NCBI GenBank assembly: GCA_964187785.1
Contig: OZ076410.1
Span: 25,978,001 to 26,042,000, forward strand
Reading direction: 5' to 3'
DNA length: 64,000 nucleotides
Source: Amphiscolops sp. MND2022
Lineage: Eukaryota
Positions 9,331 to 41,299 of this stretch are shown here, in pieces; positions within the stretch are counted from its first letter, which is position 1; every line of letters begins with the position of its first letter. A program made the position numbers and the translations under genes. The notes beneath the pieces are model-generated. The model worked only from the letters and a program-made list of their open reading frames with translations, searched no databases and was not told the origin of the DNA.

Positions 9331-9479
9331 GTAAACAAAAATACAAAAACAACCGAACAGTGAAACAACTAAATGAAGAAGAAAACGACGACCGAGATGA
9401 AACATGAAGTGATTCGGAAGAAAGTATACCTCATATCAGAGAGATAAAGAAAATTGAAGAAAGGAACAAACACTACACA

Positions 9480-12400: not shown

Positions 12401-12682
12401 ACATTATCCGAACTCGGACAAGAAATACAAATCGTTTTTATCGGAAAACTACACAACAATAATTCGCACGGTGAAGTACAAATATTGATAGCGGTAAATA
12501 GATTTAGTAAATGGCCAACCGTGAAAATCTGTAAAACCTCGGAAACAAAAGAAGTAATAAAATTCCTAATGAGTAATTTTAACTTATACGGATTATTTGA
12601 AAAAACATCCAACAAAATGGGAGCATTTATTTCGAAAGAATATAAACAATTTTGCCTAGAAAATCTTTGGATAAAAATGTAG
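9480..12682 (+). pseudogene. Pol of family A copy 1 (PR-RT-RH-spacer-IN), many frameshifts and stops
   Basis: ORF fragments include LLGMDW (protease C-term), FVSPVLIT and PAWLDDIIV (RT), TDAS (RH), and HFGQSG..WWP..CTAC (IN zinc-binding domain). Confidence 0.85.
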
Positions 12683-21200: not shown

Positions 21201-23178
21201 TTTTGTTACAATTAAAATATCGTCTATAACACAAATACACTGTATATATATACCAATGTGAGGTCCATCAATTTCTGGAATTCCGTAGGCATTACATTGA
21301 GGCCGTAAAATTCACTTGTAAATCTACAGGTGCCTGTTGATTTCCCCCCGACAATTTGAAAATCACAATGTCTTTTGGTTAAATCATGCAACGGAATTTG
21401 GACATAAGCGTATGTCATATCATTCGACGAATACCAGGCCTCTCCTTTTTTCTGGTCTAATTTCTCAGCAATCATATCAATTAAGTTATCTAAGTTCGGC
21501 ATCTGGTATTTGTCCTTAGCTATTGATTGGTTTAATGCCCTCGCGTCTAGTGCGATTTTCACAGACTTATCCTTTTTGACAGTTATTACTGTTGGTTGAA
21601 AAAAACACATCGTCTTCAATTTTATCAAACTTCTCAATATGCCCCTCCTCTAACAGTTTTTCAATTTCTTTATCGACTTGCTCTTGTAATTGAATTGGTA
21701 TTCTGCGGCCTTTTTGCCGAGTCATTTTTGCCTCGCTTTTCACATTAATTTTATAATTTTAATTTCATAGTCTTTCACAAGGCCTTCTCTTCTGAACATT
21801 TTTGGAAATTCCTCTAATAATTGATGGACCTCGGGGCATTGCTTTTCTTCGGGACTTATCTCACAAAATATTTTGTCACTATTTACACTTTGCTGAATAA
21901 ACTCACACTCACTTCTTTCTATTGGTTAGTAATTTTGTTCCGGAGTGCAACTAGCCAATCCTGGCCTACGATCAATTGTCCAAAATTAGGTGCCACTAAA
22001 ACTCGAGCTTTCGAAACGGTAACTGCTGCTACTTCGAGTCGTACGAATTGGTACCCAAGTGAATTCAACGGCTATTTATTGCAATCCACATATCTTTCAT
22101 CATCAATCATGTCTCGGATTACAACTTTCTTTCGGAGACAATTTTATGTATATCCTTCTTCGTGAATATTGGAACTGGGGAACCAGTGTCGATGATTGCT
22201 CTAAAATGATTTCCGCACATCATCTCCTCAATATAAAATGGTTTGCAACCATTTCCGTCGACTCGTAGTGCCAGTTGCTCTTCATCACCAGATTCTTCTC
22301 CTTCTTCCGATTCTTCAATTTAATTTACTCTCCTCAGGGTTTTTGCAGTGTCCCGAGTGTTTAGCCGCTGCATCACTTCTTTGTGCCGCTGAGGAACTTT
22401 CTTATTGCAGCACTTTTCCAGGTGTCCAACTATTTTTTAAAATTTACAACGGAATTTGTTGGCGATGCAGAAATTTAAATGCTCCATGGTAAAATTCGCC
22501 TCCCCACATCTGTAGCATTCCCGGGGGTTAATTTTATCTATCGCATATATTGGCTCACTTTCCACTACTGCTTTTGCTGTTTCGGGCACTTGTGTTCCGT
22601 ATGCTTTTTGCCTCTTCACCACCTCCTCGAAGGCGATTGCGAATTCTAGGGCTTGGTCTGGCTTATTAGGCTTTGTACACAGGGCCGTGGTAGGGTATTT
22701 ATCCATGAACTTCTTCTGTGCTGCGTCGTCCAAAGCCAGATACATGACACTGATGACTTTTTAAATCGCAGAATCTTCTTCCAGATACCCCAGCAACGCG
22801 CGAACCCTGGGAATCTGCTGATCGGCATCTCTCGTCATTTCTGTGATTGAGATCGAAATTTTAGCCATCACGGATACTTGAAGTAAATCTAACCACTTGT
22901 CCCAATCCATTGCTGGATTAGTGGTTGCATCGCCCCAACATACTGGCAAACCCACGAGGTTGGAAGATGCAGAAGAACTGGGGAAGTTTCAGCTCGCAGC
23001 GCCAAGTTAACGTGGAGCTCACAGACTTTTGTAAAATATATTGAAGGTTGAAATGTGTATTGATGAATGTAATTGAATGATGTTTTGACTGTTTGTTTTT
23101 ATCAAAGGCTTTTGCAAAGTATGGCTTGAACAATGTCAGAGGTTTAGATCAAGTACCAGTAGTTATTTACAAACAGTA
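17335..23178 (-). mobile_element. Decayed Ty3/Gypsy family B: LTR(truncated)-gag-pol-LTR-gag(partial) tandem arrangement
   Basis: Homologous LTR segments at 23005-23178 and 18302-~18515 (AGTTAAC..GTTAACT termini) are each followed on the minus strand by PBS TGGCGCTGCGAGC (22992-23004, 18289-18301). There are two gag copies. Pol fragments include IIDTGSP (PR), IALDAR/YVQIPL (RT), RWVDRLLPFEFEVVHVAG (RH) and an IN core at about 19200-20030. Confidence 0.85.
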
Positions 23179-23530: not shown

Positions 23531-24651
23531 GATATCACTCTAAAGCTTTATTCGACCTTGAAAAGAGTTGCTTTTATAACAAGCACTTTAGCTGAAAGAT
23601 ATATTTGAGCTGTCGAGCACATTTCATTCAAACAACAAATTCTTCTTGGAAGCACTTCAGAGTGATTTTTAGAGTGGAAAGTCCTTCAAACATCCTCTAA
23701 AACAATCCACTGATTGGAAATCAAGTACGGAAGTATGTATGAATCATCAACTCATTGCTATTGAAGTTTCTTTAGAAGCTTTGGGGAAATTATGGGTTTT
23801 ATCATGTAAGTACTATCAGTAAACAAAAAGTGATGAGACAAAAACATCTAAGTAAAAGATGTAAGTTTGTATTACTTTAAGAAGAACACTTAAAAAACCT
23901 TTGATAGCTTGAAATAGTAAAACCGCGCTCACGCTGCAATAGAACAACAATTACCTCAGTCATCAACAATTCGTATATACACAGTAGTATTTAACAAACC
24001 TTTTTTATGCTAGAAAAATTTATGACTGACTCGAGTAACAGGTACACAGCCTCTGTATATACGTATCACTTGAACAAATGTCCCCACTAAGGATTTTTTC
24101 GGAAAAAAAAATAAATAAATGCTAGTCAGAGATTATTTTTGACACTTTGTGAGGCTTGTGGAATTTTTTTCTGGGTTTATATCGTGTCTTTTATTAAATC
24201 AACAATTCCCGATAAAACGAAGTTTTGTCCTCAATTAACACAGTGAAAACTCCAAGACATGAGTGTTTGTTCCAGAAGTTAAAATGCACCTGTGATATCA
24301 AGCTTTTCATTTGAGATGCGCTAAAACAAAGGAAAACATCCATTTTTCATCCTTTTGTAGAAAGGCACACGTTTTCTTCGTTTAGCAAACACTAGCTGCA
24401 AAAAATATTGCTAAACATCTCACTCTGCAAAAAGTAATTGCTTTTTGCCCAAATTTCAAACCTCTCAACAAAAACATCAATTCACTTTTGTTAATATATG
24501 GACGTTGGGTGGAAGCACAATCTATTCCCTAGGGTGATGCGCATCGTTAATGTTATGGCAAGAATATAAACAAATAAAACTATCTCAGAGGCGATGGAAA
24601 TGAAAACGAAACCAAAATGACATTCTTTTAAAAATTATTTTTTGATGATAC

Positions 24652-26393
24652 TGTAAGAGCCACGTCCCGTGGTGTCTCTCAAATCACCAACGGACCGCGA
24701 GTCCTTTTTCAATAATTTTGTTTTCAAGCCGGATGGATTTTCCCTATTTTCCTGACTGCTAGGGGACATACTAGCCTCAGTGTCCCTGTTCCCAGAGGAA
24801 GACATTGAACTCACAATATTTTGAATCTCTGGTAGCACCTTTTCTGATATGGCAGTACTGATTGCTCTATTTATTTGGCTATGTACCATGGCCATCATGG
24901 AATCCATTTCTTGAGACAGTCTAAGATTAAATTCATTTGAGAAAGTTTCAAAAGACTGCCTAACATCGTTCTGCCTGTATTCACTATTCTCATGGGAGAA
25001 GTTTCTATATTCACCCCTTTGGTACAGATTAGCCTCACTGTCACTACGAACTGAAGATTGTTCAATTACTTCAGTTAATTCTCTCTCTATAGGATTTTCA
25101 CTCCCATTACCTAACATTATGTCCAAGTTGTCCATATCGGACATCATGTCCATTTCTCTAGACTTTCTAGTTTTCGCCTTTTGACGTCTCGTAGAAGGCA
25201 TGAGAGATTGTTGCAAGAGGAAAGAATTTAAATTGAACTCTTTAAGCTTGCAAATAATATTGTATTCGGTATTATAACAGCAAACTTGACTGTGACTATT
25301 CGTATGAAGATTATGTCCCCAGGACCACGGGTCCCGGTTTTTTTTAATCAACTAAACATGACATGCATAAAAGTGGTAGTCATCAGTCTAATTTTAGTAA
25401 CAGGTATTCTAAAAATAGACACAACATACAACGTGTCTTTACAAGTATATTATCATAATACTAAAAATAGCAACAACTATGACGTAATTGATTTACGTGC
25501 TTCTACATATATGAAGTAGTTACATTCAAAGATGTACATGCGCCCCTTCAGGCCATCCAATCAAGTTTCAGTAGCAACACTTCATGTAAAACAATACATG
25601 CTAAATCATATGAAATAAATACATGCAAAGATGGTGTGTGAACATTGAGCTGTCCTTTATGGCTTTTTAAGATACAAACAGCCCTTTTGACTTTCTATCC
25701 AGGAAGTTCTGGAAATTAAGAGAACACAAAATAAGGGGGGGAAGGACTAATGGTCCTTTTGTAAACAAGGTGACAGGTCTCCAATCAGAGCAAATATACC
25801 GCTTCTGAGATAGTACATTATCAATTTCAATATACGCACTTCTTTTATTCTACTTTGGACTCAGTGTCCACGCGTCCTTATTTAATACAAGAGTAGTGTC
25901 GTTGTGGTGGCGTGTGGCCCTTGAGTCCTTTAATTTAGAATACAGCACAGGAGCGAGCAAATGAACAATGCACTGTGATTGGTTGAGAAATTGGACGGAC
26001 AGCGCGTCTAGCGAGACAGGAAAGGAAACATTTGAACTCGTTTCCTTTACCTGTACGCCTTGGTGTCCAATTTCTCAGCCGTGGTATATATCTATCACTG
26101 TTATACATGTATTAATACACTATATTCAATTTTCAACTACATACTTTACATGGCTAATTCCGGATAATTATTCCAAAGCTTTCCAAACTTCATTAATATA
26201 AAAGCCCCGAATAAAATGATATACTTACATAAACATATGCGAAATCAATCACAATAAGATAAGTTTATAGTTTGTCTTCTTAGCCTTTTGGACTAATAGT
26301 CCATTCCTCAGTTCATTGGGAGGGTACCAGGGAGAGTATTGTAGTTGTAGCCGACTGAGTACCAATTGCCGTCGCAGGCGGCAGCCCGCGACA
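24652..26393 (-). repeat. 3' LTR (1742 bp) of the giant element; contains a copy of the gag 5' end (25201-24652)
   Basis: Near-identical to 38800-40540 (about 13 substitutions and 1 indel by eye). Confidence 0.97.
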
Positions 26394-27126
26394 CTCCCCC
26401 TGGCATAAGTAGAAAAGCGTTTGCGTTCATGCCATCTAGGAATGCTCTCCTCCTTGCCTGAGTCTCAGCTAAAGTCTCTCCTACAGTTACTGTCCTGTCC
26501 AGATATTCATTGACGGTCTCTTCTTGAATTTGTTTGACTGATTTCCCGCATACCACGCAGTCTGAGTAGTTGACTAAGGAGGGTGGCTCGGCAAGGACCA
26601 TCTCGTCGAAATGACTTGCCACCGCTTCCATTGACGTGTTCATGGAGGATGGTGAATCGCCACGAGGTTCACATGGGTATTGTAGTCCTCTGTCCTGTTC
26701 AGGTGGAGATAGCGGGGTGTCCACTTGCGGTACTAGATTTCGGCATATATTTATGGGGTGATTAGATTTGATCCTGTTGTCCCGACTTACAGGCCCATTT
26801 CCCCTTGCCAAGTTGAAGTACTTCTCCCCAAAGGTAGGAAATGGTGGCACATTTGGCCTGGGCGTCACAGGTCTTTTCTGCTTCTGACCGGCTGAGGTTG
26901 AAGGAATTGATATGGGCTCCGCAAGTTGTCTTTCAATGCATTTGGCCATGAGTCTAATCTCGTATGATTCGTCTTCGGACGACAAGTACAAGTCATCCAC
27001 AGACCACCCACAATTCGAGTCCATCGCTTCCTCTTCGTCGCTAGAGATGTATATGATTGCCGGTTCCCCTTCTGATCTTGCTGCTCCGATGAAGTCCATC
27101 GGGAAGGTCTCAGAGATGTCTGACAT
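26308..27126 (-). CDS. ORF3, 272-aa accessory protein of unknown function (acidic N-terminus with SIM-like IIYISSDEEE; CxxC), running through the PPT into U3
   Basis: ATG-initiated intact ORF whose last 86 nt lie inside the 3' LTR. No signal peptide or TM segment is visible, so it is not env-like. Confidence 0.7.
   Translation of the reverse strand: MSDISETFPMDFIGAARSEGEPAIIYISSDEEEAMDSNCGWSVDDLYLSSEDESYEIRLMAKCIERQLAEPISIPSTSAGQKQKRPVTPRPNVPPFPTFGEKYFNLARGNGPVSRDNRIKSNHPINICRNLVPQVDTPLSPPEQDRGLQYPCEPRGDSPSSMNTSMEAVASHFDEMVLAEPPSLVNYSDCVVCGKSVKQIQEETVNEYLDRTVTVGETLAETQARRRAFLDGMNANAFLLMPGGVSRAAACDGNWYSVGYNYNTLPGTLPMN
26394..26401 (-). other. Polypurine tract (AGGGGGAG) of the giant element
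   Basis: Immediately precedes the TG of the 3' LTR on the minus strand. Confidence 0.85.
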
Positions 27127-28349
27127 AGCTCGGATTTTGAAGATTTTCTTTGCAATTTTGATTGTTTTCCTGTTGGAATTTAGGTGTTGTTGAAATCAAC
27201 TGATTTTCAGCAGAGAAATTGAGATTATGGCGATCTCAGTTTCCTTCGACAGCGAGTCTCTTCGTCTCTCCTTTCCCGGGTTTTCACATTTCCCGGCAAG
27301 TAATTCTTCAATAACAGATTCCGCTTCTCTTGTTCTTTTATCATGCCGCCAAGACACTTTGTAATTGCCGACATCAGTTTTATTGACCATCATCAGCTAG
27401 GCTAATACTTCTAAGTTAGGAGAGTTACTTCAAGTGTTTATTAACACTCATCAGGTACTTGAGAGACTCAAGGAGGTAAAGTTATGGCAGTCAGCCACGC
27501 CGGCCTTCATCAATATGATCAACCAATAAGATTGCAGCAAAATTTCTCCCAAGTTAAAATGGCTTCTCAAGGTCGTAAATCCATATAAGGGATAATATAA
27601 AATGACCTTGAAAACGGAATAAAATGAAATAAAATAAAATAAATTAAAATAAAATCATGGAATAATTTTGCAAATAACAAAGTTTTCGAAATTAATGGAA
27701 AAGTAGATATCGCTGGCAGCCTTTATCCACATATCTCCATAAATTGTAAATACTTGTAAATTTGACACCAAATTGTATAGCCACGAACTCCAATCTTGAC
27801 ATCTTGTCACAACGCCAATTCTTCTTTCAATTCTTTATCATTCAGTTGTACTATTCACTTCTTGTATTATCCAGTATTTAATCACCAACGTATTTACTCA
27901 TCGTATTTTTAACCAATTATTTAGTCTTTGAGTCGTTTTTATTTATATTTTCCACTCGTCTTCAACACAGGACTCAGTGTCCATTCGTCCTCATCCCCGT
28001 GGGTTTCCTCAACTTCTCCCGGAAAATCGACATCCAGTCCCAATTTTGGACGTCCCCATCTAGCTGTCAGCTCGGCTCGACTTATCTACACAAATATCAC
28101 TTACCAACTCCCCCGCATTGGAATACTAACAGGTCAGTTGTTCTTCATACATCTTCATTAGCTAGGCTAGATTTTTGAACTAAATTGAGGCTTGATCAGG
28201 GCTCTCTTTTCGTTCAAGTACTTCCTGTCCACGTAACACGAGTGTTCACAAGTGTTCAATTTAATCTACTTCCGGAAGATTTTTTAACGCGGTTAATGGA
28301 TTTTAACTCAGGAAGCTTGCCGCTTGAATTCATTTCTTTCTATTTAGAC

Positions 28350-31300
28350 ATGTCGTCTGAAGAACAAATCGCCGACACAATTCTTCCAACATCAGAGAAT
28401 CCCGAGGTTGCCGAAGAGACCAATACAGCACCAAAGGAGCCAGTAGTGATAACTCGTCCTGACTCCAACCAGTCATCTAGTAGTGGAAACACTGAAGAGA
28501 GCATAACCACATATGCGGAGAAAACTTTACGGACACTGGCTAGTGATAATCCTTCTCTGGATATTTCATTTCTCCCGGCACCGACACTACCTGAAGATGG
28601 AACAGCAGGGCCCATAAAGGTTTCCCAGTCGATAGGTTTTGAACGTCTAGGAAAGGAAGCCTTCTCACTCGACGGCATGCAAGAAACTGGTAGCTACATT
28701 GAGCCACGGGACAAGAGCAAGGAGTACTTTGCCACTGATACTAGTGAGGCTGGCGAGCTGCTTGACGAGATGGGTACTGAAGGAACGCGTAAACGGCCTA
28801 CCTCAAGCGTTACCTGTTCTGAATTACCATCTGCAACCGAAGGTGCTGCCGGACAAGATACAGATGGTACTTCGTCTGGAGTCGCAAAGTCTGGGTTCCG
28901 AGAGGTGAAATTACCAGAACGATTTTCGGCTAATGGACAGGCTGTTTTAAGGAAACACTTCTCCTCATCTGCCCCAATTGAATTGCCTAAAGGTCACAGT
29001 ACTGTTTCATTCAGTGAGCCGCAAATACATGCCGTCCTCAAAACCATATCAGATGAAACTGTGAAATCATCCATCCATGCCATGCGTTCCCTTGTCTTAC
29101 ATGCTGTTTATGGGGCAGGAAAGCAGACTCCTGGACAGTTCCGGAAATCAATGGTTCGAGGCGTGGTCCCTACACGAGGCGATCCCAATAGCTCAGGTGC
29201 TGATACAGAAAGTGAGGGAGGAATGACAGACGATTATACGAGCGGAGCCCTCACCTCTGATGATGAGCTCGTTGTTGCAGCCAGGCCACGCTGTGGGACG
29301 CCACTACCAAGAGAACGTTCTGGCTACCCAAATACTTCCGATGAAGAGATGGACAGGACTCCTAGTACCAGCCATACCACAGTCCCTAGTCCAGGCTACA
29401 GTGAGGGAGACTACCAACCTCTAAGTGCCATGCGGGTAGAAGACCGACCACGACGACCTGGAGGCAGTCCGCCGCGCAAGAAGCGGAGGTACGTGGGCAG
29501 ACCTGGCAAAGTCATGAAGGCTGCCTATTTCAAAGGTATTCAGTGGACCAAGGTCTTCGTAACTGGACCACTAGATCCTGTGCATAACAAGCACAAATTC
29601 TACTGCCAAATTTGCAAGGCGAACGTGTCAATCTATTCCAAAGGGGCCAGAGAAATCGTGAGACACTACCAGAGTGAGACCCATCTGCGCAAAGACCAAC
29701 GATGGCGCTACGAACACCTTAGTAGGGTGGACAAAATCAGTGGACAGACTGTCCATGCAGTTAGAGGGAGGGACGGACATCTCCTTTCCGCTCTAGAACT
29801 AGAGAAGGAGAAGCCACGTTTCGAATCGGCTCCATTAGTGGATATTGGCCCTAGATTTCCCTTTTACGACGACTATATGGCCAATGCTGGGGGAATTGCA
29901 TGCCCCGAAGATTTGAGACTGGGTACTCAACTTTCTTTGATTGGACGAGCGGTCCCACATTTCGGCAATCTGACTGTACTGGAGAGACTGTGGGCCGAGG
30001 TTGGGAATTTCACCAATCATCAAGACACTTTCCGACAGCTTGATTGGAGTTCGCTCACGCTCACTGTAAGTCTTTTCATTCTTTCTACAAGTTAGGACCA
30101 CTAAGCGTATGAATTTTGAAAGTGTACCTTAATCCACTAAGTCTGTTGAGCCATAGTTTGCCCTTTCCAATTTTTGGTGATTTCGTTTTGTTCTAGGCCA
30201 TGTTTCACCACATCTTTTTGCGCGGAATGGAGGATATAGCCCAGTCCGTGAATTCCTGCGGCTCATACTCTCTGGAGTTTGAACCACACGGAAATCAGTG
30301 CATCCTTTCAATCAGATACTGGAAGGCGAGTACCCTGGCCAAGGTTCAATTGTGCAAGTACCCACTGCCTTCGGACCCGGGCCCCAGTCAGTTACTGATG
30401 GTTTCACGCCTACTGTCCTTTCTTTCCACGCTGCCACAAATTGCCTGTGTATCAGGTTGTACTTCCGAGGTGTTGCGATCAGTTGAGCGTTCCGGGCTGT
30501 TCAAGAAGGGCATCGAGTACCCATTCCGCTTCAATGCCTTTTCTCTTCACAAGCTAATGCATCAGCTTGAAGGGAGTGTGTTCGGACGAATTGACTTCTT
30601 CACACAGCTGAAGTACCTTCTGGCCTTCCTCAACAACAGTCTAGATGAGCCTTGGATGTCTTCTTGCCCAGAACTGACCAAGGTTTGAATTAATATTGCT
30701 GGACTCGTATGTTTGCACATTGTTTGTGCGTCTCACAGCACAGAGTATTCCTTTTAGGCTATAATCAATTTCGACTTGAAGATACGGTGCATTCCGACTA
30801 TTTGTACTGAATTGATCAGCAACTGGCAGCCTCTTCTTGACCACCTGACCAGACTTGCCCCTGGCTACGAAATGCGAGGAGTTAAAAATAAGGTTTCGAT
30901 TTTTCCTTCTACCTGTTTCGGTTTTCTTCTCATGACGTACGACCCCAGGATCACTATCCATTAATTGCTTGAGTTCCCTTTTAGCCGCAGAGTCTTGAGT
31001 GGACTATCATCACCGATGACTTCTTCTTAGTCAAGTTGGAATTCTTTGGAAAGATCATCTATGATTGTGAGTATTGCTTTTGTTTCAGAGGGAATTTACT
31101 CGTGATCGTTCACGTAGTTTCTTTGCAGGGACTCACTAGGTAAGGCTTTGTACTCAGAGGTCTATTTCCCTGTTTAGATATTCGTTGCTTTGAGAGAAGT
31201 CTAGTTGGACACAGGGACGCTGGTTTCTTCACCTTTGGGCAGTTGAATAATTTTGCCCGTAAGCTATGCTATCGCTCTTTGCTCCCCAAGCACCATCCTA

Positions 31301-32337
31301 GCGAAACCGATTGGACTCAACTTCCCATTCTGCGAACTGCTGAATTGCGACAACTCTCCACCAGGGACTTTCTTCACCGCTTGAAATTGAAAGAAGATCT
31401 AGACGGAGCTGCTAATTCTAAGGTCAAGCGGGACTACAGTGACAAGGAAGGGCCAATACCTAATTTCCCCAAACTCGTTGAGGAATGCAAGGAGAAGTTC
31501 GCTGGAAAAGCAAGGGGTTATGTGGTCTACCTTCTTGAGAAGCTGCTAGCGCATCACAGCATCAATGCTGAGATTGTGAAGGGAATGGCCAGTTTTGACC
31601 CACACATCCTCTTGAGTCTGCCTCGAGACCAGGCGACCTATTGTTACCGGGCACTGTATAACAGCTTCAATCTCCGTGGATGGTTGGAAGGATTCTCTGA
31701 AGACGACTGTCGGGACGAGTACCTCGAATTTATCGACTTATTTCGCGAAAAGTATGCTACCCTGGAAGATTCGCCTGATGGTTTTACTGATATGGTGGAA
31801 TTGTTGTCTAATATGACTGAGCTCCGAAGTCGACCTCATTTGTATCGTTTATTTCGATTGTGTTGCTTGTGCTTGACAGAGGACACCCCTTTGCTTCCGC
31901 CTATCCGTTTCCAGGATGTTGACGCACAGAGTCCTCGGTGTAGATTGGGTGACGTGTTGCTTCCTGCTCAGTCTTTCCTAGCACGAGCCCCTGACGCCAT
32001 CTCGGTTTGCACTAACGATGTCTCTTTGTGTAAATATCGTGAGGTTGAGCAGCAATTCAATTCTGGCAATGTGGCTGGTGACCCTTGGGTCCACGTCGAC
32101 ACTTTTGGGCGAGCTAATTTTTATAAGACTCTCCATGCCGCTTACGAATCTGTGGTCCGAGTGCCGAGGTCAGCTTCCTCGAGTAAGACTGGTTCGCGTT
32201 CTAATTCTCCTGCTGCAGTTGGTCGGCGTAAATCTTCTCCTGGGAAAGCAAAAAAGAAAGTTTCTTTTGATGGCTCCAATGCTGTGAAGGGTACCACAGA
32301 CGGCCAAGAAGCTGGACAGAAGGCCACTAAATCTTAA
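28350..32337 (+). CDS. Antisense spliced cargo gene, ~1192 aa: low-complexity N-terminus, NLS, BED-type zinc finger, degenerate hAT-transposase-like body
   Basis: Predicted exons are 28350-30065, 30197-30682, 30758-30892, 30985-31066 and 31178-32337. The four GT-AG introns (131, 75, 92, 111 bp; phases 0,0,0,1) join into one stop-free frame of 3579 nt. PPRKKRR lies at about 29469-29489 and C-x2-C-x16-H-x5-H at 29604-29684. A probable 5'UTR intron is 28133-28347. Confidence 0.8.
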
Positions 32338-32561
32338 ATGTACATATGTACATTTGTTCTTTAGTCTGTTATTTTGTATTTAACATGAACTAACTGATCT
32401 TTCTTTTATTTGTTGAAGCATTTTGTGGATTGCTTGTTGACCCTTGGGTCTCTTTTATTGTTTTTTATTGTATTTATTTGAAAAGTTCAGAGTCAGAGTA
32501 GTCCCAGTAAAAATATTAATTTAGTCCAAGAGACTTATGGGACTTTAATTTACATGTCTGA

Positions 32562-35500
32562 CTAGTATCTGTATTCATCAGTGAAGTTGGGGGTGGGGTT
32601 AGGTCGAAGATTATATTTCCCTCCTCTAGGGCTAGAATTTTTTTCATTTTTTCCTTTTTCCGATATTCCGGGCACGGTAATATCTACGCCCCTTTCTGAA
32701 GCAATTTCCGCATTCTCTAAGTCATTTGTGACGTCATTTTGATTTTCCGTCCCACGTGGCGTTTCGTCTAGCGGGGACGACGCGTTACGGTTGCTGGCCG
32801 ATCTCGGCCGTACTTCATTCTCGTTGACGTCATTGTCATTCATTCTCTCGCTGCTGCGCTCACTTTCGTTTACGCTGCTGCTTTCATTCTCGGTGACGTA
32901 ATAGTCGACTTCTCCGTTCGCGGCGTCCTGTGGCAGACGCGTGGCCGTATGTGGCCAATCATTTATCTTCGGCTCGAATAGCTCGTACTCAAAGTCCGCT
33001 TCCCATGAAATGGTATACAGATCATCTTGCGGTATTACGATTTCTTCATCGGGCTGTAATTTCTCTTCTTCGTATTTGTCCTCTAATGGAGCATTTGGGA
33101 CAAATTTTTTGAGCCTTATCCGGTGCAAGATTTGCGTTTTATTCGTATTTAAACGACGCACTATATAATTGTTATTTGGTAGAGTTTTTTGAACGACAAA
33201 AGGACCAATCCATCGGAAGTCCCTAAATGGTATCTTAGAGCCTTGACTATCCGCTTTCGGTTGAAGAACAAAACAGTAGTCTTTCTCTTGTAGCGGAGCT
33301 GCTTTGGCCTTGCGGTCGTAGTACTCCTTGTACTTTAAATACGACTGCATAATATTCCTTTTGGTTTGATCAATGAGGATTTGTGTCCTCTGCTGCAATT
33401 CTTCCGCGAATTCAGTCGTCGGTAGGAAATTTTTGTTAGGATTATTCCCTAATTTGTGATCCAGGACGTTATAGGGAATTCGGCCATGAAAGACTTTGCT
33501 AGGCTCACAACCAATACTAGCGTGATAAGTAGTGTTATAGTTAAGCACAGCTAATGGTAAATATTTGTGCCATTGACGACGGTATTCCCCTGAGGCCATC
33601 TTTAGGTTGGTTTTTAAAGAGGCGTGTGTCCTTTCAAATTTACCAATAGTTTGCGGATGTTTAGTAGTGGCACACTTCAATGTGATCCCCAGTATTGCAG
33701 TAATTTCTTCTAAAATTTTTGATGTAAATGCGGATCCCTTGTCCGTGATGAGTGTTGTTGGCAAATACGAATGTTTCGTCATGATGTCAATTATCACCTT
33801 GGCTACGTTTGCGGCTGTTGCCTCAATTAGCGGGTAGGCGAATAAATATCTTGAAAATACGTCTATTGCCGTCATCACCGTTTGGTATCCGCCGCTGGTT
33901 GGTAAATTTGGCAGTAAATCGATTTGCATGGCATCTTCTGGGCCTAGGTCCCATTCAGGTAAATTCAGTAATTCTGGGGTGATTACCGTGTTGGGGACCC
34001 TTTTGTCCTTGGCACATGTTTCGCAGCCTTCTACCCATTTTTTGACGTGTTTAGCAATTCCGGGGTAGTAGTATTTTTGGCGAATTTCCTGCAGCATTTT
34101 AGAAATGCCCGGGTGTCTATGTGCCGTGCCATGTATTGCTTGCAATAATTCTTTGAGCAAATGCTTTGGCAATAAGATTTGATGATATTTGACCTGTCCG
34201 GTTTCATCGTAGTACTGCCGCGTCACTATCTCGTCTTTGAGGACTATTCGATCTATGTTGTTCAAGTAATACTTGTACCGAATATCCTGTTGAAGGATTT
34301 CTTCAGAGTATTCTTCTTTTTGAAGTTTCGCCCTCAATTGGAGGAGAATCGGGTCTCTGGATTGTTCAAGCAGTATCTGATTTGTTCTTCTTAATTTCTG
34401 CGTGAAATTGGTAATCTCTTCGACGGTATTTTCTGATATAGCGTCAATTTGGATTACTGTCTCAGGGACTATGAGGCCCTTTTTGGATTGTTGTTTCCGT
34501 TTCCAAATCTGTTCTTCTGTTTCGTTGTCCTCCTCGGTGAAGAAAATTTGCTCTTCTTCTGATACGCCGGCTGATTGGACATTGACCTCGATCGGTCTAG
34601 TTTCTACGTCCTCTCGTATTTTCAGGACCAACTTTTCAGTAGGGTCCATTTCCATACGGGACAAGTAGTCTGCCGCTGTATTGTTTTTGCCTGGAATGTG
34701 AGCTATAATGAAGTTGAATTGAATGACAAAATCACAAGCATTCCAGAGAGGCGGTGGAATTATCTTTGTCTGGAAGAACCTCGTGACCGATTTGTTATCT
34801 GTGAGGATAATCACGGGTTGAGGTGTTCCCCAGAAGATATGTCCAAACTCCTTAAATGCATAATATATAGCTAGGAATTCCTTTGCATATATCGACATTT
34901 TGAGCTGAGAAGGCGTGAAAGTTTTGGATCCATATGCAATCGGCGCATAGGACTTTTTAACAGAAGTGTATTTTTGATTTGGGTCGTCTTCGGTCAATAT
35001 GGCGTAACCGGCTGCTGTAAAACTTGCGTCAGTCATGAGGACCAGTTGTTTGTTCGGCAGAGGTTGTTTCAACGCCAATTGACTACATCGGTCTAAATCA
35101 CGGTTGATCGCAATAAATTGTTCAACCAGCTCTTGCGTGACTAGTACCTTTTCATCCTTTTTGAGCAATTGGAAGAAAGGAACTAGTTTTTCGGATAGCC
35201 TTGGAATATAATTCCTGTAGTAATTGAGGAAACCAATATAGCGTTGTAAGGCCTTCTTGGACTTTGGGAATTTCGTCTTTTCCAAGAAGATAGCGATTCT
35301 TTCTTTTTGGGGCTTTACGCCTTCAGGTGTAATGGTTCTCCCAAGAAAGTCAATTTCAGTAGCGCCGAAATGGCACTTGTGCATGGAAAATTTCAATCCT
35401 GCTTCTCTGATACATTGGAACGTTGCTCTTAAGTTGACGATAAGCTGGTTAGCGTCTGTCGCCGCGACACCGATATCGTCCACATATTGAGCACATTGGT

Positions 35501-37631
35501 CTGCTTTTATAACACGATCCAGGTATTCCCTCATGAAACTGGAGAAGGCCGACAGGGCTCTACTGAGTCCTTGGGCCAATCTTCTATATGCAAATGTCCT
35601 GCTGGCGAAGTTGAAAGCTAGCATTTCAATCGATTTCTGGTCTGCCATAGGAAGGCAATGATAAGCTTGGGAACAGTCGAGTTTGCAAAAGAGCTTTTTG
35701 CCTGCCATATGTTGCGCCGCATCCGTCAAGGTGCTGACTGGGTGGTTGTTATTGACGTAGTCATCTGAAATCAGATTATTGATCTTCCGCAAATCCACCA
35801 ACAGTCTCAGTTTTCCATTGGGTTTTTTCTGCGCAAATATTGGACCGGCGTACTTCGAGAATGGTAATGTTGTTATAATCCCATATTTATGGAGTAATGC
35901 CAGTTCGACCAATATGTCCTCTTTGAGGTTGACCGGAGTAGGTAGGCTCTGACTGTAAGCAGGCGACTCGTCCTTTGGGGTCAGTTTGACCGTAAATTCC
36001 TCATTGACGCCAATGTCAAATTTATGGCGTGCAAAGATGTCATGGAATTCCACTAATAGAGTTTCTATTTGTCTGATTTCATGTTGTTGTAACATTGAGT
36101 CCTTCCAATCAAAGTTGCCGAGGAATTTTCGACGAGATTCCGCATCGTCGTGCGGGTTGAGTTGTTCTAAACTTTGCAGGTTTCGTAATTCTTTGAGAAT
36201 TCTTTGTTGTATTGGGGTATGGGTCGTTTCGTCCCCTGGGTTTTCAGGCGTCGGGAACCAATATTGTTCGTATTGGTCATTATTTCTGTTAGCTTTAAGA
36301 AGGCTACTAATATAATAAATAGCGTCGTCTTCATTTTCATTCAGTAAGTGCCAGGTGGACACTGGGTCTATTGGCCTGACGTGTTTCATCTGTTCAGGGG
36401 TCATCACTGAAAAGTTTGCAATGTGCATCCCTTTCTTTATTTTATAGGGTTGATCAGTGAAATTGTTGACGTGTATTCTCGTAGCCCCTTCATGTAGTGT
36501 GAATATGGCGGTACAGAAGGTTATGTCGCCTTCCTCGTGCAGAAGATCGCTGGGTTGCAATATGCCCGTAACTGCATTTTCTGCGTAAATTTGTGATTGA
36601 ATGGGTATGACCACATGGTCATTGGGCGGAATTGTGACATCCTCAGGATTGAGGATGGGTTCCAAAACATTTGAGTATTTATGGTCAGCCGTCTTGAGTT
36701 GCATCGAGAAGTAGGGAAAGTTGAGTATACCTTGGCGCATGTCCAGGACAGTGTGGTTCCTTTGAAGGAATATTAGTCCAATTATGGGGCTTGACAGTTT
36801 TTCCATTACAATGAAAATTTCGTGAAATTCTATGTCGCCCACTTCGAATTTTAGTTCGACTGTGCTCTTTGGGGTTTCTAAGTCTCCATTTGCGACCATT
36901 ATTTGGAAGGATGGGGCAGGACCTTCTTTTACAATGGATTGAGGGGCCAACAGGCGTATTTTCCTGAGGTCTGCCTCCGGGATTGCACTGGAGTGGGCTC
37001 CAGTGTCTATCAGGCCATCTAGAGTTAATTCCCCAAAGTCCATTGGGAAATAGAGCATTCGTCGTTTGAATTTAAGTCCAAGGTTTGTTGAAAGGGGAAC
37101 GTATGGTAATTCTCCTTCTTTGGTCACTAGGAGGTGTAAGAAGGCTGTCTCGTCTAAAAGACTATTAGGAGCCTTGTGGTCCTCCTGTGTGTGTATGGCG
37201 TCTCCTTCTTGTATAGTTGCCTCAAAGTTCGGCTGCCAAAGATCAATGAGGGCCCGAGACAGTGTGTTGTCTTCGATGTCTGGGTCGTCCTCGTCGTCAG
37301 TTGGAGGGTAATCTTCGTTTCGAAATTGTAAATTTGTTTTGTCATATAGTTCGTCGTCCCAGTACGGGTCTTTGCCATACTCGGGGTCATAGTACTGAGG
37401 GTTATAATCTTCGACAGTTTGTAAGGGTCTAAATTGAGTTTCAGAGTCGTTGTAATTGCTATTCCGTCGATATAGGTATGGGTGATCACTGTGAATGATA
37501 TATTGAGTTTCTTTGCGGGCGTCGGCCAACTGCTGCTGCCAGACAGTCGATGGCATCCCTGTGGTGTCGTTTTGAGTTTGTTTATATGTAATGTTTGCAG
37601 GGTCAGATATGACGTACTGTCGTACTGACAT
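32562..37631 (-). CDS. Pol polyprotein (PR, dUTPase-like insert, RT, RNase H, integrase), 1689 aa from the first Met
   Basis: Motifs: LIDTGA (protease), LLVDLR, KLDCSQAY and YVDD (RT), TDAS (RH), H-x3-H..CETC, IDLL/TDKG/FER core and WIGPF (GPY/F module). The PR-RT-RH-IN order is diagnostic of Ty3/Gypsy. Confidence 0.97.
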   Translation of the reverse strand: MSVRQYVISDPANITYKQTQNDTTGMPSTVWQQQLADARKETQYIIHSDHPYLYRRNSNYNDSETQFRPLQTVEDYNPQYYDPEYGKDPYWDDELYDKTNLQFRNEDYPPTDDEDDPDIEDNTLSRALIDLWQPNFEATIQEGDAIHTQEDHKAPNSLLDETAFLHLLVTKEGELPYVPLSTNLGLKFKRRMLYFPMDFGELTLDGLIDTGAHSSAIPEADLRKIRLLAPQSIVKEGPAPSFQIMVANGDLETPKSTVELKFEVGDIEFHEIFIVMEKLSSPIIGLIFLQRNHTVLDMRQGILNFPYFSMQLKTADHKYSNVLEPILNPEDVTIPPNDHVVIPIQSQIYAENAVTGILQPSDLLHEEGDITFCTAIFTLHEGATRIHVNNFTDQPYKIKKGMHIANFSVMTPEQMKHVRPIDPVSTWHLLNENEDDAIYYISSLLKANRNNDQYEQYWFPTPENPGDETTHTPIQQRILKELRNLQSLEQLNPHDDAESRRKFLGNFDWKDSMLQQHEIRQIETLLVEFHDIFARHKFDIGVNEEFTVKLTPKDESPAYSQSLPTPVNLKEDILVELALLHKYGIITTLPFSKYAGPIFAQKKPNGKLRLLVDLRKINNLISDDYVNNNHPVSTLTDAAQHMAGKKLFCKLDCSQAYHCLPMADQKSIEMLAFNFASRTFAYRRLAQGLSRALSAFSSFMREYLDRVIKADQCAQYVDDIGVAATDANQLIVNLRATFQCIREAGLKFSMHKCHFGATEIDFLGRTITPEGVKPQKERIAIFLEKTKFPKSKKALQRYIGFLNYYRNYIPRLSEKLVPFFQLLKKDEKVLVTQELVEQFIAINRDLDRCSQLALKQPLPNKQLVLMTDASFTAAGYAILTEDDPNQKYTSVKKSYAPIAYGSKTFTPSQLKMSIYAKEFLAIYYAFKEFGHIFWGTPQPVIILTDNKSVTRFFQTKIIPPPLWNACDFVIQFNFIIAHIPGKNNTAADYLSRMEMDPTEKLVLKIREDVETRPIEVNVQSAGVSEEEQIFFTEEDNETEEQIWKRKQQSKKGLIVPETVIQIDAISENTVEEITNFTQKLRRTNQILLEQSRDPILLQLRAKLQKEEYSEEILQQDIRYKYYLNNIDRIVLKDEIVTRQYYDETGQVKYHQILLPKHLLKELLQAIHGTAHRHPGISKMLQEIRQKYYYPGIAKHVKKWVEGCETCAKDKRVPNTVITPELLNLPEWDLGPEDAMQIDLLPNLPTSGGYQTVMTAIDVFSRYLFAYPLIEATAANVAKVIIDIMTKHSYLPTTLITDKGSAFTSKILEEITAILGITLKCATTKHPQTIGKFERTHASLKTNLKMASGEYRRQWHKYLPLAVLNYNTTYHASIGCEPSKVFHGRIPYNVLDHKLGNNPNKNFLPTTEFAEELQQRTQILIDQTKRNIMQSYLKYKEYYDRKAKAAPLQEKDYCFVLQPKADSQGSKIPFRDFRWIGPFVVQKTLPNNNYIVRRLNTNKTQILHRIRLKKFVPNAPLEDKYEEEKLQPDEEIVIPQDDLYTISWEADFEYELFEPKINDWPHTATRLPQDAANGEVDYYVTENESSSVNESERSSERMNDNDVNENEVRPRSASNRNASSPLDETPRGTENQNDVTNDLENAEIASERGVDITVPGISEKGKNEKNSSPRGGKYNLRPNPTPNFTDEYRY

Positions 37632-37660
37632 CTTGTTACATATTTGGAGTCGTGGCGAAA

Positions 37661-39349
37661 TTAGTTTTTTGAGTCCGTTTTACGTAAGTTTGATTGGCTT
37701 GAAGATGCAGTTTCAGGGTTAGTTGACTTTTTGGACGATTTTTCATCGCCAGAGGTGTCATCAGCCTTATCCTCAGGACGTGTCCTTTTGGGTCGTAAAT
37801 GTGCTCCAGCCCCTTTCCAGCATCTTTCAACAGGGTGATTTTTCTTTCCGCAAGTAGGGCATTCTGGGTATGTAGGACGTTGGGGCTTTTTGCCATTTTT
37901 GTCCTCCAGTTCTTTCTTCTTCTTCAATTTAGGGCAGCTCTTATAGAAGTGGCCTGTGGCTTTACAATAAGAGCATTGTGCGTCCTTTTTAGTATTTATG
38001 CCATTAGAGAGCAAATTGTTGTTACTGGTGGACGCAGAGGCCATTGTAGCGATTGGCAAATCGTCTGACTCTTCTAATGCGTTGAGTTCAAGCTCTCTTT
38101 CAAGATGAGCGACGACTTCTTCATATGTCCCGTTCTCCAGGCGGGCCATATTGACAGATCGTTTCAATTTTGGAGGCAGTTTTGCGTATAATAGGCTGTC
38201 AATCATGCTTTTTGCATTTTCGCCGAAAGCTTTTTCTGCCCCCTGGTTCAGTTCTTCCAAGAAATCCGGCAATTTCATGGTATTCGGATCGAAAGTCAGC
38301 CGATGCCATTTGTGTTTTGCCGTTGCTTGGGATTCCGGTTTGACGTATTTCCTCCGGAATATGATTAGCACATCCTCGAGTGTTTGGCGGTTAATTGAGT
38401 TTATGTTCCTGAAGGTCTGCAGGGCCCCTTTTCTGAGCAATGAGTGAAAATGGTTTATTTTCATTTGCTCTGTCATGGCCGGTTGCATTTTGATCATTGC
38501 GTGGAACAAATCTTCAAAGAGTTCGAATTTCTCACTCTTTCCGTCAAACGTCATTGGTGTCGTTTGGACAGGTCGGATAGTCATCGTTTGGGGTTTATTT
38601 TGCAAATTGACTAGTACATCAGCCAATCTATTGAGCGGGTCCTGAGGCTGCTCTGTGACCTCTGGTTCTGGCGCTGGCAGAGTGGTGTCCAAAGAGACAT
38701 TGTGGTTAGACTGCTGTCTCTCTAGGTTCAGGATTGAGTGGATTCGTCCAGTGAGAAATTCAGGTATAGGCTGTTGGGCTTCGTTAGCTCCTGTCACCAT
38801 GTAAGAGCCACGTCCCGTGGTGTCTCTCAAATCACCAACGGACCGCGAGTCCTTTTTCAATAAGTTTGTTTTCAAGCCGGATGGATTTTCCCTATTTTCC
38901 TGACTGCTAGGGGACATACTAGCCTCAGTGTCCCTGTTCCCAGAGGAAGACATTGAACTCACAATATTTTGAATCTCTGGTAGCACCTTTTCTGATATGG
39001 CAGTACTGATTGCTCTATTTATTTGGCTATGTACCATGGCCATCATGGAATCCATTTCTTGAGACAGTTCAAGATTAAATTCATTTGAGAAAGTTTCAAA
39101 AGACTGCCTAACATCGTTCTGCCTGTATTCACTATTCTCATGGGAGAAGTTTCTATATTCATCCCTTTGGTACAGATTAGCCTCACTGTCACTACGAACT
39201 GAAGATTGTTCAATTACTTCAGTTAATTCTCTCTCTATAGGATTTTCACTCCCATTACCTAACATTATGTCCAAGTTGTCCATATCGGACATCATGTCCA
39301 TTTCTCTAGACTTTCTAGTTTTCGCCTTTTGACGTCTCGTAGAAGGCAT
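37661..39349 (-). CDS. Gag, 562 aa from MPSTRRQK, with two CCHC zinc knuckles; the first ~183 codons lie in the 5' LTR
   Basis: CSYCKATGHFYKSC and CPTCGKKNHPVERC. The ORF-track start at 39499 is a TTG; the first ATG is at 39349. Confidence 0.9.
   Translation of the reverse strand: MPSTRRQKAKTRKSREMDMMSDMDNLDIMLGNGSENPIERELTEVIEQSSVRSDSEANLYQRDEYRNFSHENSEYRQNDVRQSFETFSNEFNLELSQEMDSMMAMVHSQINRAISTAISEKVLPEIQNIVSSMSSSGNRDTEASMSPSSQENRENPSGLKTNLLKKDSRSVGDLRDTTGRGSYMVTGANEAQQPIPEFLTGRIHSILNLERQQSNHNVSLDTTLPAPEPEVTEQPQDPLNRLADVLVNLQNKPQTMTIRPVQTTPMTFDGKSEKFELFEDLFHAMIKMQPAMTEQMKINHFHSLLRKGALQTFRNINSINRQTLEDVLIIFRRKYVKPESQATAKHKWHRLTFDPNTMKLPDFLEELNQGAEKAFGENAKSMIDSLLYAKLPPKLKRSVNMARLENGTYEEVVAHLERELELNALEESDDLPIATMASASTSNNNLLSNGINTKKDAQCSYCKATGHFYKSCPKLKKKKELEDKNGKKPQRPTYPECPTCGKKNHPVERCWKGAGAHLRPKRTRPEDKADDTSGDEKSSKKSTNPETASSSQSNLRKTDSKN
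37664..37670 (-). promoter_or_regulatory. -1 ribosomal frameshift slippery site A_AAA_AAC
   Basis: Lies directly before the gag TAA. The -1 frame reads KKLISPRLQICNK-MSVRQY, in frame with pol. Confidence 0.8.
38788..38799 (-). other. Primer-binding site TGGTGACAGGAG (tRNA-Leu-like), embedded in the gag ORF
   Basis: Abuts the LTR terminal CA. It matches 11/12 to the complement of the vertebrate tRNA-Leu(CAG) 3' end as I recall it; host tRNA not verified. Confidence 0.75.
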
Positions 39350-40540
39350 GAGAGATTGTTGCAAGAGGAAAGAATTTAAATTGAAATCTTTAAGCTTGCA
39401 AATAATATTGTATTCGGTATTATAACAGCGAACTTGACTGTGACTATTCGTATGAAGATTATGTCCCCAGGACCACGGGTCCCGGTTATTTATAATCAAC
39501 TAAACATGACATGCATAAAAGTGGTAGTCATCAGTCTAATTTTAGTAACAGGTATTCTAAAAATAGACACAACATACAACGTGTCTTTACAAGTATATTA
39601 TCATAATACTAAAAATAGCAACAACTATGACGTAATTGATTTACGTGCTTCTACATATATGAAGTAGTTACATTCAAAGATGTACATGCGCCCCTTCAGG
39701 CCATCCAATCAAGTTTCAGTAGCAACACTTCATGTAAAACAATACATGCTAAATCATATGAAATAAATACATGCAAAGATGGTGTGTGAACATTGAGCTG
39801 TCCTTTATGGCTTTTTAAGATACAAACAGCCCTTTTGACTTTCTATCCAGGAAGTTCTGGAAATTAAGAGAACACAAAAGAAGGGGGGAAGGACTAATGG
39901 TCCTTTTGTGAACAAGGTGACAGGTCTCCAATCAGAGCAAATATACCGCTTCTGAGATAGTACATTATCAATTTCAATATACGAACTTCTTTTATTCTAC
40001 TTTGGACTCAGTGTCCACGCGTCCTTATTTAATACAAGAGTAGCGTCGTTGTGGTGGCGTGTGGCCCTTGAGTCCTTTAATTTAGAATACAGCACAGGAG
40101 CGAGCAAATGAACAATGCACTGTGATTGGTTGAGAAATTGGACGGACAGCGCGTCTAGCGAGACAGGAAAGGAAACATTTGAACTCGTTTCCTTTACCTG
40201 TACGCCTTGGTGTCCAATTTCTCAGCCGTGGTATATATCTATCACTGTTATACATGTATTAATACACTATATTCAATTTTCAACTACATACTTTACATGG
40301 CTAATTCCGGATAATTATTCCAAAGCTTTCCAAACTTCATTAATATAAAAGCCCCGAATAAAATGATATACTTACATAAACATATGCGAAATCAATCACA
40401 ATAAGATAAGTTTATAGTTTGTCTTCTTAGACTTTTGGACTAATAGTCCATTCCTCAGTTCATTGGGAGGGTACCAGGGAGAGTATTGTAGTTGTAGCCG
40501 ACTGAGTACCAATTGCCGTCGCAGGCGGCAGCCCGCGACA
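38800..40540 (-). repeat. 5' LTR (1741 bp) of the giant element
   Basis: Direct repeat of 24652-26393, bounded by the PBS and the TSD. Confidence 0.97.
39991..40129 (-). promoter_or_regulatory. Candidate LTR core promoter/polyA region: CCAAT (40125-40129), TATTAAATAA (40025-40034), AATAAA (39991-39996)
   Basis: Order and spacing on the minus strand match a typical U3-R arrangement. Motif-only evidence. Confidence 0.35.
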
Positions 40541-41299
40541 GATACCAATTTCTGTTTTCTGCCATTAAAATCCCGAGTCAGACTTGATTCGACTCCGGTT
40601 TATGGTGTAAACACTCCTAATAATTCTTCAGTTCAGTTAGTCCTATGATGAAGACAGACCTTGGCTGCCATCTTCTTAGTAGGCCCATGTCAAATGAGGA
40701 TTTCAGTTTTTTGGATTGCATCTTGCAAAAAGTTGCTTGAAATCATTATGTTCTGATTTTTGTGTTAGATAAGTTTCCTTGAAAGTTCTATAGCACGTTT
40801 GTGTCTTCTTCGAAATGGCTGAAGTGGCTGAATATGTGGATGCTGAAGATCAGCTACAAGTTGACGAAGAAAGAACGCTCGTTCGGTTGCAACGGTCGTT
40901 ACTTGATTCTTTTTTGATTCGCAGCCGGATAATGTAAAGGAAAGTAAAGTTAATTTTTTCAGATGTCTTTAAAAAGTATAATTTATACTTTAGTATAATT
41001 ATACAAATTTATATTAGTATAATTTATACTAGTATAAAAGTATAAATACAAGTCAAACAATGCCACGTTTCAATAGTGAACTACAGTGATCTGAATACCA
41101 ATCGCTGTGATGAGGAGCAGCAAAAAACTACTTTGTTTGTATATTAGTTCCAATAAGGTTTTGTCTCAATTCAAGTGTTTTCGGTTATTATTCGCCCATG
41201 TTTTGGAAAATTGGAGTGAAAAAATACTGCCTGTGTTTTCGATCGACGCTCCTTGAAGGAATGAGCACACCATTACAGTGATTAGTTTGTTCTTCGGCT

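Follow-up and report, generated by a model that had tools for sequence, protein, structure and literature searches.

A recently inserted Ty3/Gypsy retrotransposon with two accessory genes, one a predicted five-exon gene on the antisense strand

Extra genes in LTR retrotransposons mark the step from a simple element towards a complex retrovirus. Antisense accessory genes have so far been discussed almost only for plant Tat/Retand elements and a few vertebrate retroviruses, and their function is unknown in every case. In the plant Tat/Retand-lineage Ty3/Gypsy elements (Retand, maize Grande, rice RIRE2), additional antisense ORFs lie between pol and the 3′ LTR. They form a conserved coding region present in nearly all active copies, encode a protein predicted to bind DNA and mostly carry the Transposase_28 (PF04195) domain. 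Antisense genes of the HBZ type in deltaretroviruses seem to follow a comparable plan, with a spliced and probably nuclear regulatory protein encoded on the antisense strand between pol/env and the 3′ LTR (PMC11963269). In animals, the bdelloid rotifer Gypsy-like families Vesta, Juno and TelKA have a protease, dUTPase, RT, RNase H, integrase order in pol and family-specific, modular third ORFs that are gained and exchanged (PMC5408684). Those ORF3s are sense-strand genes with recognisable origins (env-like, GDSL esterase, DEDDy exonuclease), and the one mention of antisense in that study concerns small-RNA reads, not an antisense gene.

Here we describe an intact Ty3/Gypsy element which combines a sense accessory gene with a large antisense gene predicted to contain four spliceosomal introns. 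As far as our searches reached, such a layout has not been described for an animal-type element. The element was found in a 64,000-nucleotide stretch of DNA, hereafter the window. An initial annotation had interpreted the locus as a young, intact member of a complex animal retrotransposon lineage with its own accessory gene set. Our analysis confirms the observation and supports this interpretation, although an animal host is likely but not shown: the window comes from an unnamed eukaryotic contig of a metagenome-type assembly, and only an S1 protease ORF near one related locus (L003), which matches metazoan proteases, hints at an animal.

The element spans positions 24652-40540 (15,889 bp) and lies on the minus strand. 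Its 3′ LTR (24652-26393, 1,742 bp) and 5′ LTR (38800-40540, 1,741 bp) align over 1,742 columns at 99.196% identity, with 13 mismatches and 1 gap. Both have TG..CA ends and the element is flanked by a 5-bp GATAC target-site duplication (24647-24651 and 40541-40545). A sequence beginning with TGG (TGGTGACAGGAGCTA, 38785-38799, minus strand), taken as the PBS, directly follows the 5′ LTR, and a polypurine tract (..CCAGGGGGAG, 26394-26403, minus strand) directly precedes the 3′ LTR. Both are conserved in related families. No Rfam family or tRNA gene was found in the window or in the related loci.

The gag gene (37661-39349, minus strand) encodes 562 aa with two CCHC knuckles and is uninterrupted. 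As a correction to the initial annotation, the gag ATG at 39349 lies 549 nt inside the 5′ LTR, and the PBS lies inside the gag reading frame. The last ~550 nt of the 3′ LTR repeat the gag N-terminal coding region, which explains a 238-aa ORF at 24635-25351. An A AAA AAC heptamer (37664-37670, minus strand) directly before the gag stop is the inferred site of a -1 ribosomal frameshift into pol.

The pol ORF (32562-37631, minus strand) encodes 1,689 aa, is uninterrupted and is in the -1 frame relative to gag, this frame being open from 37679. Pfam matches follow the Gypsy order along the protein: gag-asp_proteas 204-291, RVT_1 602-767, RT_RNaseH 859-957, Integrase_H2C2 1155-1210 and rve 1231-1326. 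In window coordinates, the protease lies at about 36759-37040, RT at about 35331-35828, RNase H at about 34761-35087 and integrase at about 33654-34169. A dUTPase-like match at about 36399-36647 is borderline (22.1 bits against a cut-off of 22). The best solved-structure match is Ty3 Gag-Pol (7q5b, E = 1.6e-44), ahead of the spumavirus and other retroviral polymerases among the next hits. Bel/Pao membership is not supported: we found only a sub-threshold DUF1759 match in gag (23.2 bits against a cut-off of 25.4) and no Peptidase_A17 match, and the RNase H and integrase families matched are the Gypsy-type ones.

Between the pol stop and the 3′ LTR lie 6,168 bp (26394-32561) which contain the two additional genes. 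The first, ORF3 (26308-27126, minus strand), is in the sense orientation and encodes an acidic protein of 272 aa (pI 4.6) with no transmembrane segment, no known domain and a conserved core shared by all relatives. The initial annotation placed ORF3 between pol and the 3′ LTR; we found that it runs 85 nt into the 3′ LTR, whose first 85 nt on the minus strand (26393 down to 26309) encode the ORF3 C-terminus. The polypurine tract lies inside ORF3.

The second gene is on the plus strand, antisense to gag-pol. Three ORFs in three frames join through four GT..AG introns into a single 1,210-codon reading frame with no stop. Exon 1 (28296-30065, 590 codons) encodes a disordered acidic N-terminal part of about 400 aa, a basic RKKRR cluster, then a C-x2-C-x16-H-x5-H zinc finger pattern and a structured region. 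It is followed by intron 1 (30066-30196, 131 nt), exon 2 (30197-30682, 162 codons), intron 2 (30683-30757, 75 nt), exon 3 (30758-30892, 45 codons), intron 3 (30893-30984, 92 nt), exon 4 (30985-31066), intron 4 (31067-31177, 111 nt) and exon 5 (31178-32337, 386 codons) with the stop codon. Exon 5 encodes a predicted all-alpha domain with no fold match. While no expression data support the splicing directly, the model is consistent with several observations. Cross-family protein similarity ends exactly at the exon edges. Intron 3 is precisely missing in the related loci L002 and L003, and intron 2 in L005, with the frame reading straight through, while the window needs intron 3 removed to stay in frame. 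Finally, between the window and the intact related copy L007, introns are 79-85% identical and exons 86-93%, and exon indels are multiples of three.

The region between ORF3 and the antisense gene (27127-28295) is divergent. It contains DNA blocks conserved in all frames and on both strands (about 27.40-27.88 kb), plus an island at 28176-28366 that stays 84% identical even to families whose antisense protein is only 43% identical. We infer this region to be the internal promoter and 5′ UTR region of the antisense gene.

Next, we investigated whether the module is a stable part of the lineage. All 11 related loci fetched (L001-L010 and L012, from the ENA assemblies ERZ25074608, ERZ1742291 and ERZ26859043), including intact copies and distant families, show gag-pol, then the antisense ORFs, then sense ORF3, in the same order and orientation. 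The most distant, L012, shares only 62% RT-RNase H identity, 40% identity in the ORF3 core and 29% in exon 5. Homologues of exon 1 comprise at least 1,523 member sequences in 120 clusters, making the antisense protein a large family without any annotation. Scans of JGI metagenome contigs and of IMG/VR found no relatives.

The accessory genes do not appear to evolve neutrally. For the window compared with L007, dN/dS is 0.22 for the disordered N-terminal part of antisense exon 1, 0.049 for its zinc-finger part, 0.064 for exon 2 and 0.113 for exon 5, compared to 0.083 for pol and 0.127 for gag (0.18 for the LTR-encoded part of gag). These values rest on one informative pair only. ORF3 is saturated at synonymous sites and its ratio is unreliable, but it keeps a conserved core down to 31-40% identity. 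Together with the maintenance of open frames across families, this suggests purifying selection on both genes.

Neither protein matches any Pfam family or solved structure. No Pfam family was reported for any antisense exon at E <= 0.01 to 10, either as single sequences or as alignment members, and profile searches of PDB sequences returned nothing significant for either gene. AlphaFold2 models of exon 1 and exon 5 searched with Foldseek against PDB and BFVD likewise gave no significant match. The zinc-finger pattern is conserved in intact copies, and the best fold hit of the exon 1 model is the ZBED1 BED finger, but this hit is weak and not significant (E = 1.6, probability 0.16), and Pfam zf-BED was not matched. 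We found no evidence of an env gene: no hydrophobic window of 19 residues reaches a Kyte-Doolittle mean of 1.6 in ORF3 or the antisense protein, and no env family appeared in Pfam.

Unexpectedly, the antisense gene can differ sharply between elements with nearly identical backbones. For example, L002 is 98.2% identical to the window in LTR plus ORF3 and 97.9% in gag-pol, but only 43-55% identical in the antisense protein, with the segment 27948-32505 differing as a block, which points to cassette exchange. L007 is 97% identical in pol protein but only 55% in ORF3. That L002 has the same LTR but a very different antisense protein argues against a simple model in which the protein co-evolves with a binding site in its own LTR.

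We consider it likely that this is a recently integrated, structurally intact member of a Ty3/Gypsy lineage in which the region between pol and the 3′ LTR is an integral accessory module inherited across the whole lineage. By inference, the antisense gene is transcribed from an internal promoter and spliced by the host, and its introns survive retrotransposition because they are in reverse orientation in the genomic RNA and so cannot be spliced from it. Its product, with a disordered acidic N-terminus, a basic nuclear-localisation-like cluster, a BED-like zinc finger and about 700 aa of predicted helical domains, is most likely a nuclear nucleic-acid-binding factor that acts in trans on the element's own expression or integration, or on a host response. 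The nuclear accessory protein of maize Grande and the antisense proteins of deltaretroviruses are analogues. ORF3 is probably expressed from a subgenomic or spliced sense RNA. Both accessory genes are inferred to diverge, or to be swapped by recombination, far faster than gag-pol, which fits interaction with something that itself evolves quickly.

Compared with the plant antisense ORFs, the antisense gene described here has no Transposase_28 or other Pfam match, and no detectable homology despite the analogous architecture. It is predicted to contain four spliceosomal introns, encodes 1,210 aa, is paired with a second, sense accessory gene and is apparently from an animal. Retroviral antisense transcripts appear to start in the 3′ LTR and to encode small bZIP factors. 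Here the coding sequence starts at 28296, 1.9 kb inside the 3′ LTR boundary at 26393, the gene is six times larger, and no bZIP or other known domain was found.

A more far-reaching possibility, which we put forward only tentatively, is that a lineage of animal Ty3/Gypsy elements has evolved a retrovirus-like complex genome, with a sense accessory gene plus a large, intron-bearing antisense gene encoding a protein family with no known relatives. In this view, the exchange of both genes as cassettes between otherwise near-identical elements suggests an ongoing conflict with the host or between elements, of the kind usually associated with viral accessory genes. Intron loss at exact positions would also show that the antisense mRNA is spliced and occasionally copied back into the element.

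Alternatively, the antisense gene could be a cellular gene captured in reverse orientation and carried as a passenger with no role for the element. Its spliceosomal introns and host-like gene structure, and the absence of similarity to any known retroelement protein, are in line with this idea, and capture is the usual explanation for extra ORFs that occur in single families (PMC11963269). Nonetheless we consider it unlikely. A passenger with no role would decay, whereas this gene is kept open with low dN/dS in active lineages and persists across families with 29-45% protein identity and in three assemblies. All examined homologues lie inside Gypsy elements. No homologue from an annotated genome source (NCBI, UniRef) appeared among the cluster members looked up or among the hits considered in the homologue searches, although sources were checked for only ten hits of the representative search. 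A cellular origin in the distant past remains possible.

It is very unlikely that the module is an independent mobile element nested in a standard Gypsy element, such as a DNA transposon whose transposase carries a BED finger, as hAT elements do. The weak BED-type hint and the block-like replacement of 27948-32505 could be read this way. However, a search of the module and its edges for inverted or direct terminal repeats down to 14 nt gave only chance-sized matches, and no target duplication was found. The position and orientation of the module are identical in all 11 related loci, and no copy was seen outside a Gypsy context. No hAT, DUF4371, DDE or dimerisation domain was found in Pfam or PDB searches with single sequences or profiles, and no transposase appeared in fold searches, which were limited to models of single exons. 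An ancient origin from such a transposase cannot be excluded, but it is not supported. Lastly, chance open frames or an assembly chimera, suggested by nothing beyond the lack of database matches, are refuted by the more than 1,500 homologous sequences, the exon-precise conservation, shared intron positions and low dN/dS; about 97x coverage of the window's own contig and the independent assembly of the same architecture in three samples also speak against them.

The lineage is abundant, young and probably from an animal, and its natural intron-presence variants and cassette swaps on an almost identical backbone make it a favourable system for asking when and where such genes are expressed and what they co-vary with. 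The finding also shows that eukaryotic host contigs in metagenome assemblies hold uncharacterised mobile-element biology. The initial annotation contrasted the two lesion-free accessory genes with every other retroelement in the window, described as decayed; we found that the other retroelement remains in the window are only short RT and IN fragments, at about 10.3-12.7 kb and 20.6-21.6 kb.

The element at 24652-40540 is a 15,889-bp LTR retrotransposon. Its two LTRs (24652-26393 and 38800-40540) align over 1,742 columns at 99.196% identity, with 13 mismatches and 1 gap; they begin with TG and end with CA, and the element is flanked on both sides by GATAC. All long sense ORFs are found on the minus strand, so the right-hand LTR is the 5′ LTR and the left-hand LTR is the 3′ LTR. 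A sequence beginning TGG (TGGTGACAGGAGCTA), taken as the PBS, abuts the 5′ LTR, and a purine run (..CCAGGGGGAG), taken as the PPT, abuts the 3′ LTR. Both are conserved in related families whose LTRs are otherwise only 73-82% identical. The LTR divergence of about 0.75% means that the insertion is recent.

The gag gene (37661-39349, 562 aa) has two CCHC knuckles. Its ATG lies 549 nt inside the 5′ LTR (38800-39349), so that each LTR carries 183 gag codons and the PBS sits within the gag reading frame. Accordingly, the 238-aa ORF found in the 3′ LTR (24635-25351) is simply the repeated gag N-terminus running out into flanking DNA. The LTR-encoded part of gag has a dN/dS of 0.18 against L007, an intact related element, so it is real coding sequence. 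gag ends with the heptamer A AAA AAC followed by TAA and pol is open in the -1 frame from 37679, a standard frameshift arrangement from which we infer the frameshift itself.

The pol ORF (32562-37631, 1,689 aa) gives Pfam matches in the order protease, dUTPase, RT, RNase H, integrase zinc-binding domain and integrase core, and its best solved relative is Ty3 Gag-Pol (7q5b, E = 1.6e-44). The dUTPase-like stretch (36399-36647, pol residues 329-411) is borderline, with 22.1 bits against a cut-off of 22, and is also weakly flagged in the related locus L001. The order protease, dUTPase, RT, RNase H, integrase is already known from bdelloid Gypsy-like families (PMC5408684). No gene of this copy is broken: we found zero stops and zero frameshifts in gag, pol, ORF3 and the five antisense exons.

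Next, we investigated whether the 6,168 bp between the pol stop and the 3′ LTR are part of the element. This region has no terminal inverted repeats or duplication of its own. A search with the first antisense ORF returned more than 120 clusters, which hold at least 1,523 member sequences and go down to 32% identity, and an exhaustive profile search of 1.84 billion representatives gave 1,292 clusters at E <= 0.001 and 264 at E <= 1e-30. We fetched the genomic surroundings of eleven of these homologues (loci L001-L010 and L012), which come from three ENA assemblies; the element itself lies on contig ctg180267_97x_l of ERZ25074608. Ten of the eleven loci show gag-pol on one strand, the antisense ORFs on the other and then a sense ORF3 before the LTR. 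The eleventh, L006, is a 5-kb contig that holds only the antisense ORFs. The most distant locus, L012 from ERZ26859043, shares 62% identity in RT-RNase H, 40% in the ORF3 core and 29% in antisense exon 5.

Several of these relatives are decayed. For example, pol is split into several called ORFs in L001, L003, L004, L008 and L009, while L002, L007 and L010 are intact like the element described here. The L005 locus, a whole 14,233-bp short-read contig from ERZ1742291, is circularly permuted (pol 3′ part, module, one LTR, gag, pol 5′ part) and its length is about one element minus one LTR, as expected if many copies, tandem copies or a one-LTR circle collapsed during assembly.

The three plus-strand ORFs of the module are in three different frames. 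Protein-level similarity to distant families (L002, L003, L004) stops exactly at five blocks, and the block edges are GT..AG both in this element and in the relatives. Joining 28296-30065, 30197-30682, 30758-30892, 30985-31066 and 31178-32337 gives 1,210 codons without a stop. Three independent checks support this spliced gene model. First, intron presence varies at exact positions: intron 3 is absent in L002 and L003 and intron 2 is absent in L005, with the frame reading straight through, whereas the copy described here cannot be read through intron 3. Second, introns diverge faster than exons, with 79-85% identity to L007 in the introns compared to 86-93% in the adjacent exons. Third, exon indels are multiples of three. 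Based on the established retrotransposition mechanism, we infer that introns can persist in a retroelement only if they are not spliced out of the genomic RNA, which holds here because they are in reverse orientation. We further infer from the precise intron loss that spliced antisense mRNA has existed and has been copied back.

To estimate selection, we compared the element with L007, both copies being intact, using the Nei-Gojobori method. In this one informative pair, dN/dS is 0.083 for pol (dS 0.18), 0.127 for gag (dS 0.37), 0.22 for the disordered part of antisense exon 1 (dS 0.46), 0.049 for the zinc-finger part of exon 1 (dS 0.56), 0.064 for exon 2 (dS 0.50) and 0.113 for exon 5 (dS 0.33). 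ORF3 is only 55% identical between these two elements and is saturated at synonymous sites, so its ratio (about 0.1-0.15) is unreliable; its conserved core nevertheless recurs in every family. At 26308-26403, ORF3 reads through the PPT, the conserved MPGGVS residues being the PPT/LTR junction, and ends 85 nt inside U3 of the 3′ LTR, and part of its conservation may therefore be due to cis-acting constraints. The 224-nt spacer between the converging stops of the antisense gene and pol (32338-32561) is 94.8% identical to L007 apart from a 31-nt deletion. This is more conserved than the antisense exons, and the spacer may hold 3′-end signals for one or both transcripts.

The antisense protein, of about 135 kDa, has an acidic, low-complexity N-terminal region of about 400 aa that is predicted to be disordered, a basic RKKRR cluster, a C-x2-C-x16-H-x5-H zinc finger conserved in intact copies, and about 700 aa of mostly helical sequence. 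The structure model of exon 5 is confident over residues 1-210 and is all-alpha, with no fold match (best PDB E = 0.74; best BFVD E = 0.042). The best hit of the exon-1 model is the BED finger of ZBED1, but it is not significant (E = 1.6). ORF3 is acidic (pI 4.6) with a conserved Cys-containing core. Neither protein has a transmembrane segment, so neither is an env, and neither matches any Pfam family or PDB sequence.

Interestingly, and beyond the initial annotation, both accessory genes appear to be modular. The L002 element, which resides in the same genome, is 98.2% identical at the nucleotide level over LTR plus ORF3 (24652-27947) and 97.9% over gag-pol (32506-40230), yet the segment between, containing the antisense gene, is barely alignable as DNA and protein identity is only 43% in exon 1, 55% in exon 2 and 52% in exon 5. 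The changeover points lie near 27948 and 32505, just outside the antisense coding region. Conversely, L007 has a pol protein 97% identical to that of the element described here and an antisense protein 85-93% identical, but its ORF3 is only 55% identical. In L010, the pol protein is 86% identical, antisense exon 1 42% and ORF3 43%. Both accessory genes thus exist as deep types that are shuffled among closely related backbones, and we infer that recombination during reverse transcription of co-packaged RNAs is the likely cause. A 190-nt island at the 5′ end of the antisense gene (28176-28366) stays 84% identical even to families whose antisense protein is only 43% identical, and blocks at about 27.40-27.88 kb are conserved in all frames and on both strands, which is how cis-acting DNA, such as a promoter, would behave.

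Taken together, the element combines a standard, complete Gypsy replication apparatus with two extra genes under selection. This confirms the initial annotation of an intact Gypsy element with a 6-kb module of two extra genes and supports its reading of a lineage with its own accessory gene set. We are fairly confident that the region is an integral, functional accessory module of a Gypsy lineage. Without expression data, we infer that the antisense gene has its own internal promoter and is spliced, and that ORF3 is expressed from a subgenomic or spliced sense RNA. More tentatively, the antisense product may be a nuclear, nucleic-acid-binding zinc-finger protein that acts in trans on the expression or integration of the element, or on a host response. 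L002 keeps the same LTR with a different antisense type, which argues against strict co-evolution between the protein and an LTR binding site.

The closest architecture is found in the plant Retand/Grande/RIRE2 group, with a 2.9-6.6 kb region between pol and the 3′ LTR and conserved antisense ORFs that probably bind DNA (PMC11963269, PMC7264820). Those ORFs mostly carry Transposase_28, which is absent here, and introns are not mentioned in the text describing them. Deltaretroviral antisense genes are analogous in strand and probably in splicing; they appear to start in the 3′ LTR and to encode small bZIP proteins. Bdelloid elements share the dUTPase, borderline here, and the idea of a modular ORF3, but the study describing them reports no antisense gene (PMC5408684). 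We found no description of an antisense, intron-bearing accessory gene in a metazoan LTR retrotransposon, although the literature searched was incomplete and did not include Repbase. An animal host is likely but not proven, since an S1 protease ORF near L003 matches only metazoan proteases in PDB. Two further points of interest are the presence or absence of introns at exact positions and the inferred cassette exchange of both accessory genes.

Elsewhere in the window, short and decayed RT and integrase fragments of unrelated retroelements are found at 10287-12682 and 20634-21637, with 23-27% identity to this pol and no trace of the antisense gene or ORF3. One of these decayed fragments overlaps a region of about 4 kb (8001-12000) with strong AT skew (+0.37), which no tandem array explains. 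Finally, an apparently intact 1,300-aa non-LTR retrotransposon ORF (endonuclease plus RT) lies next to the L002 element (L002 739-4641), and the host genome seems rich in young retroelements.
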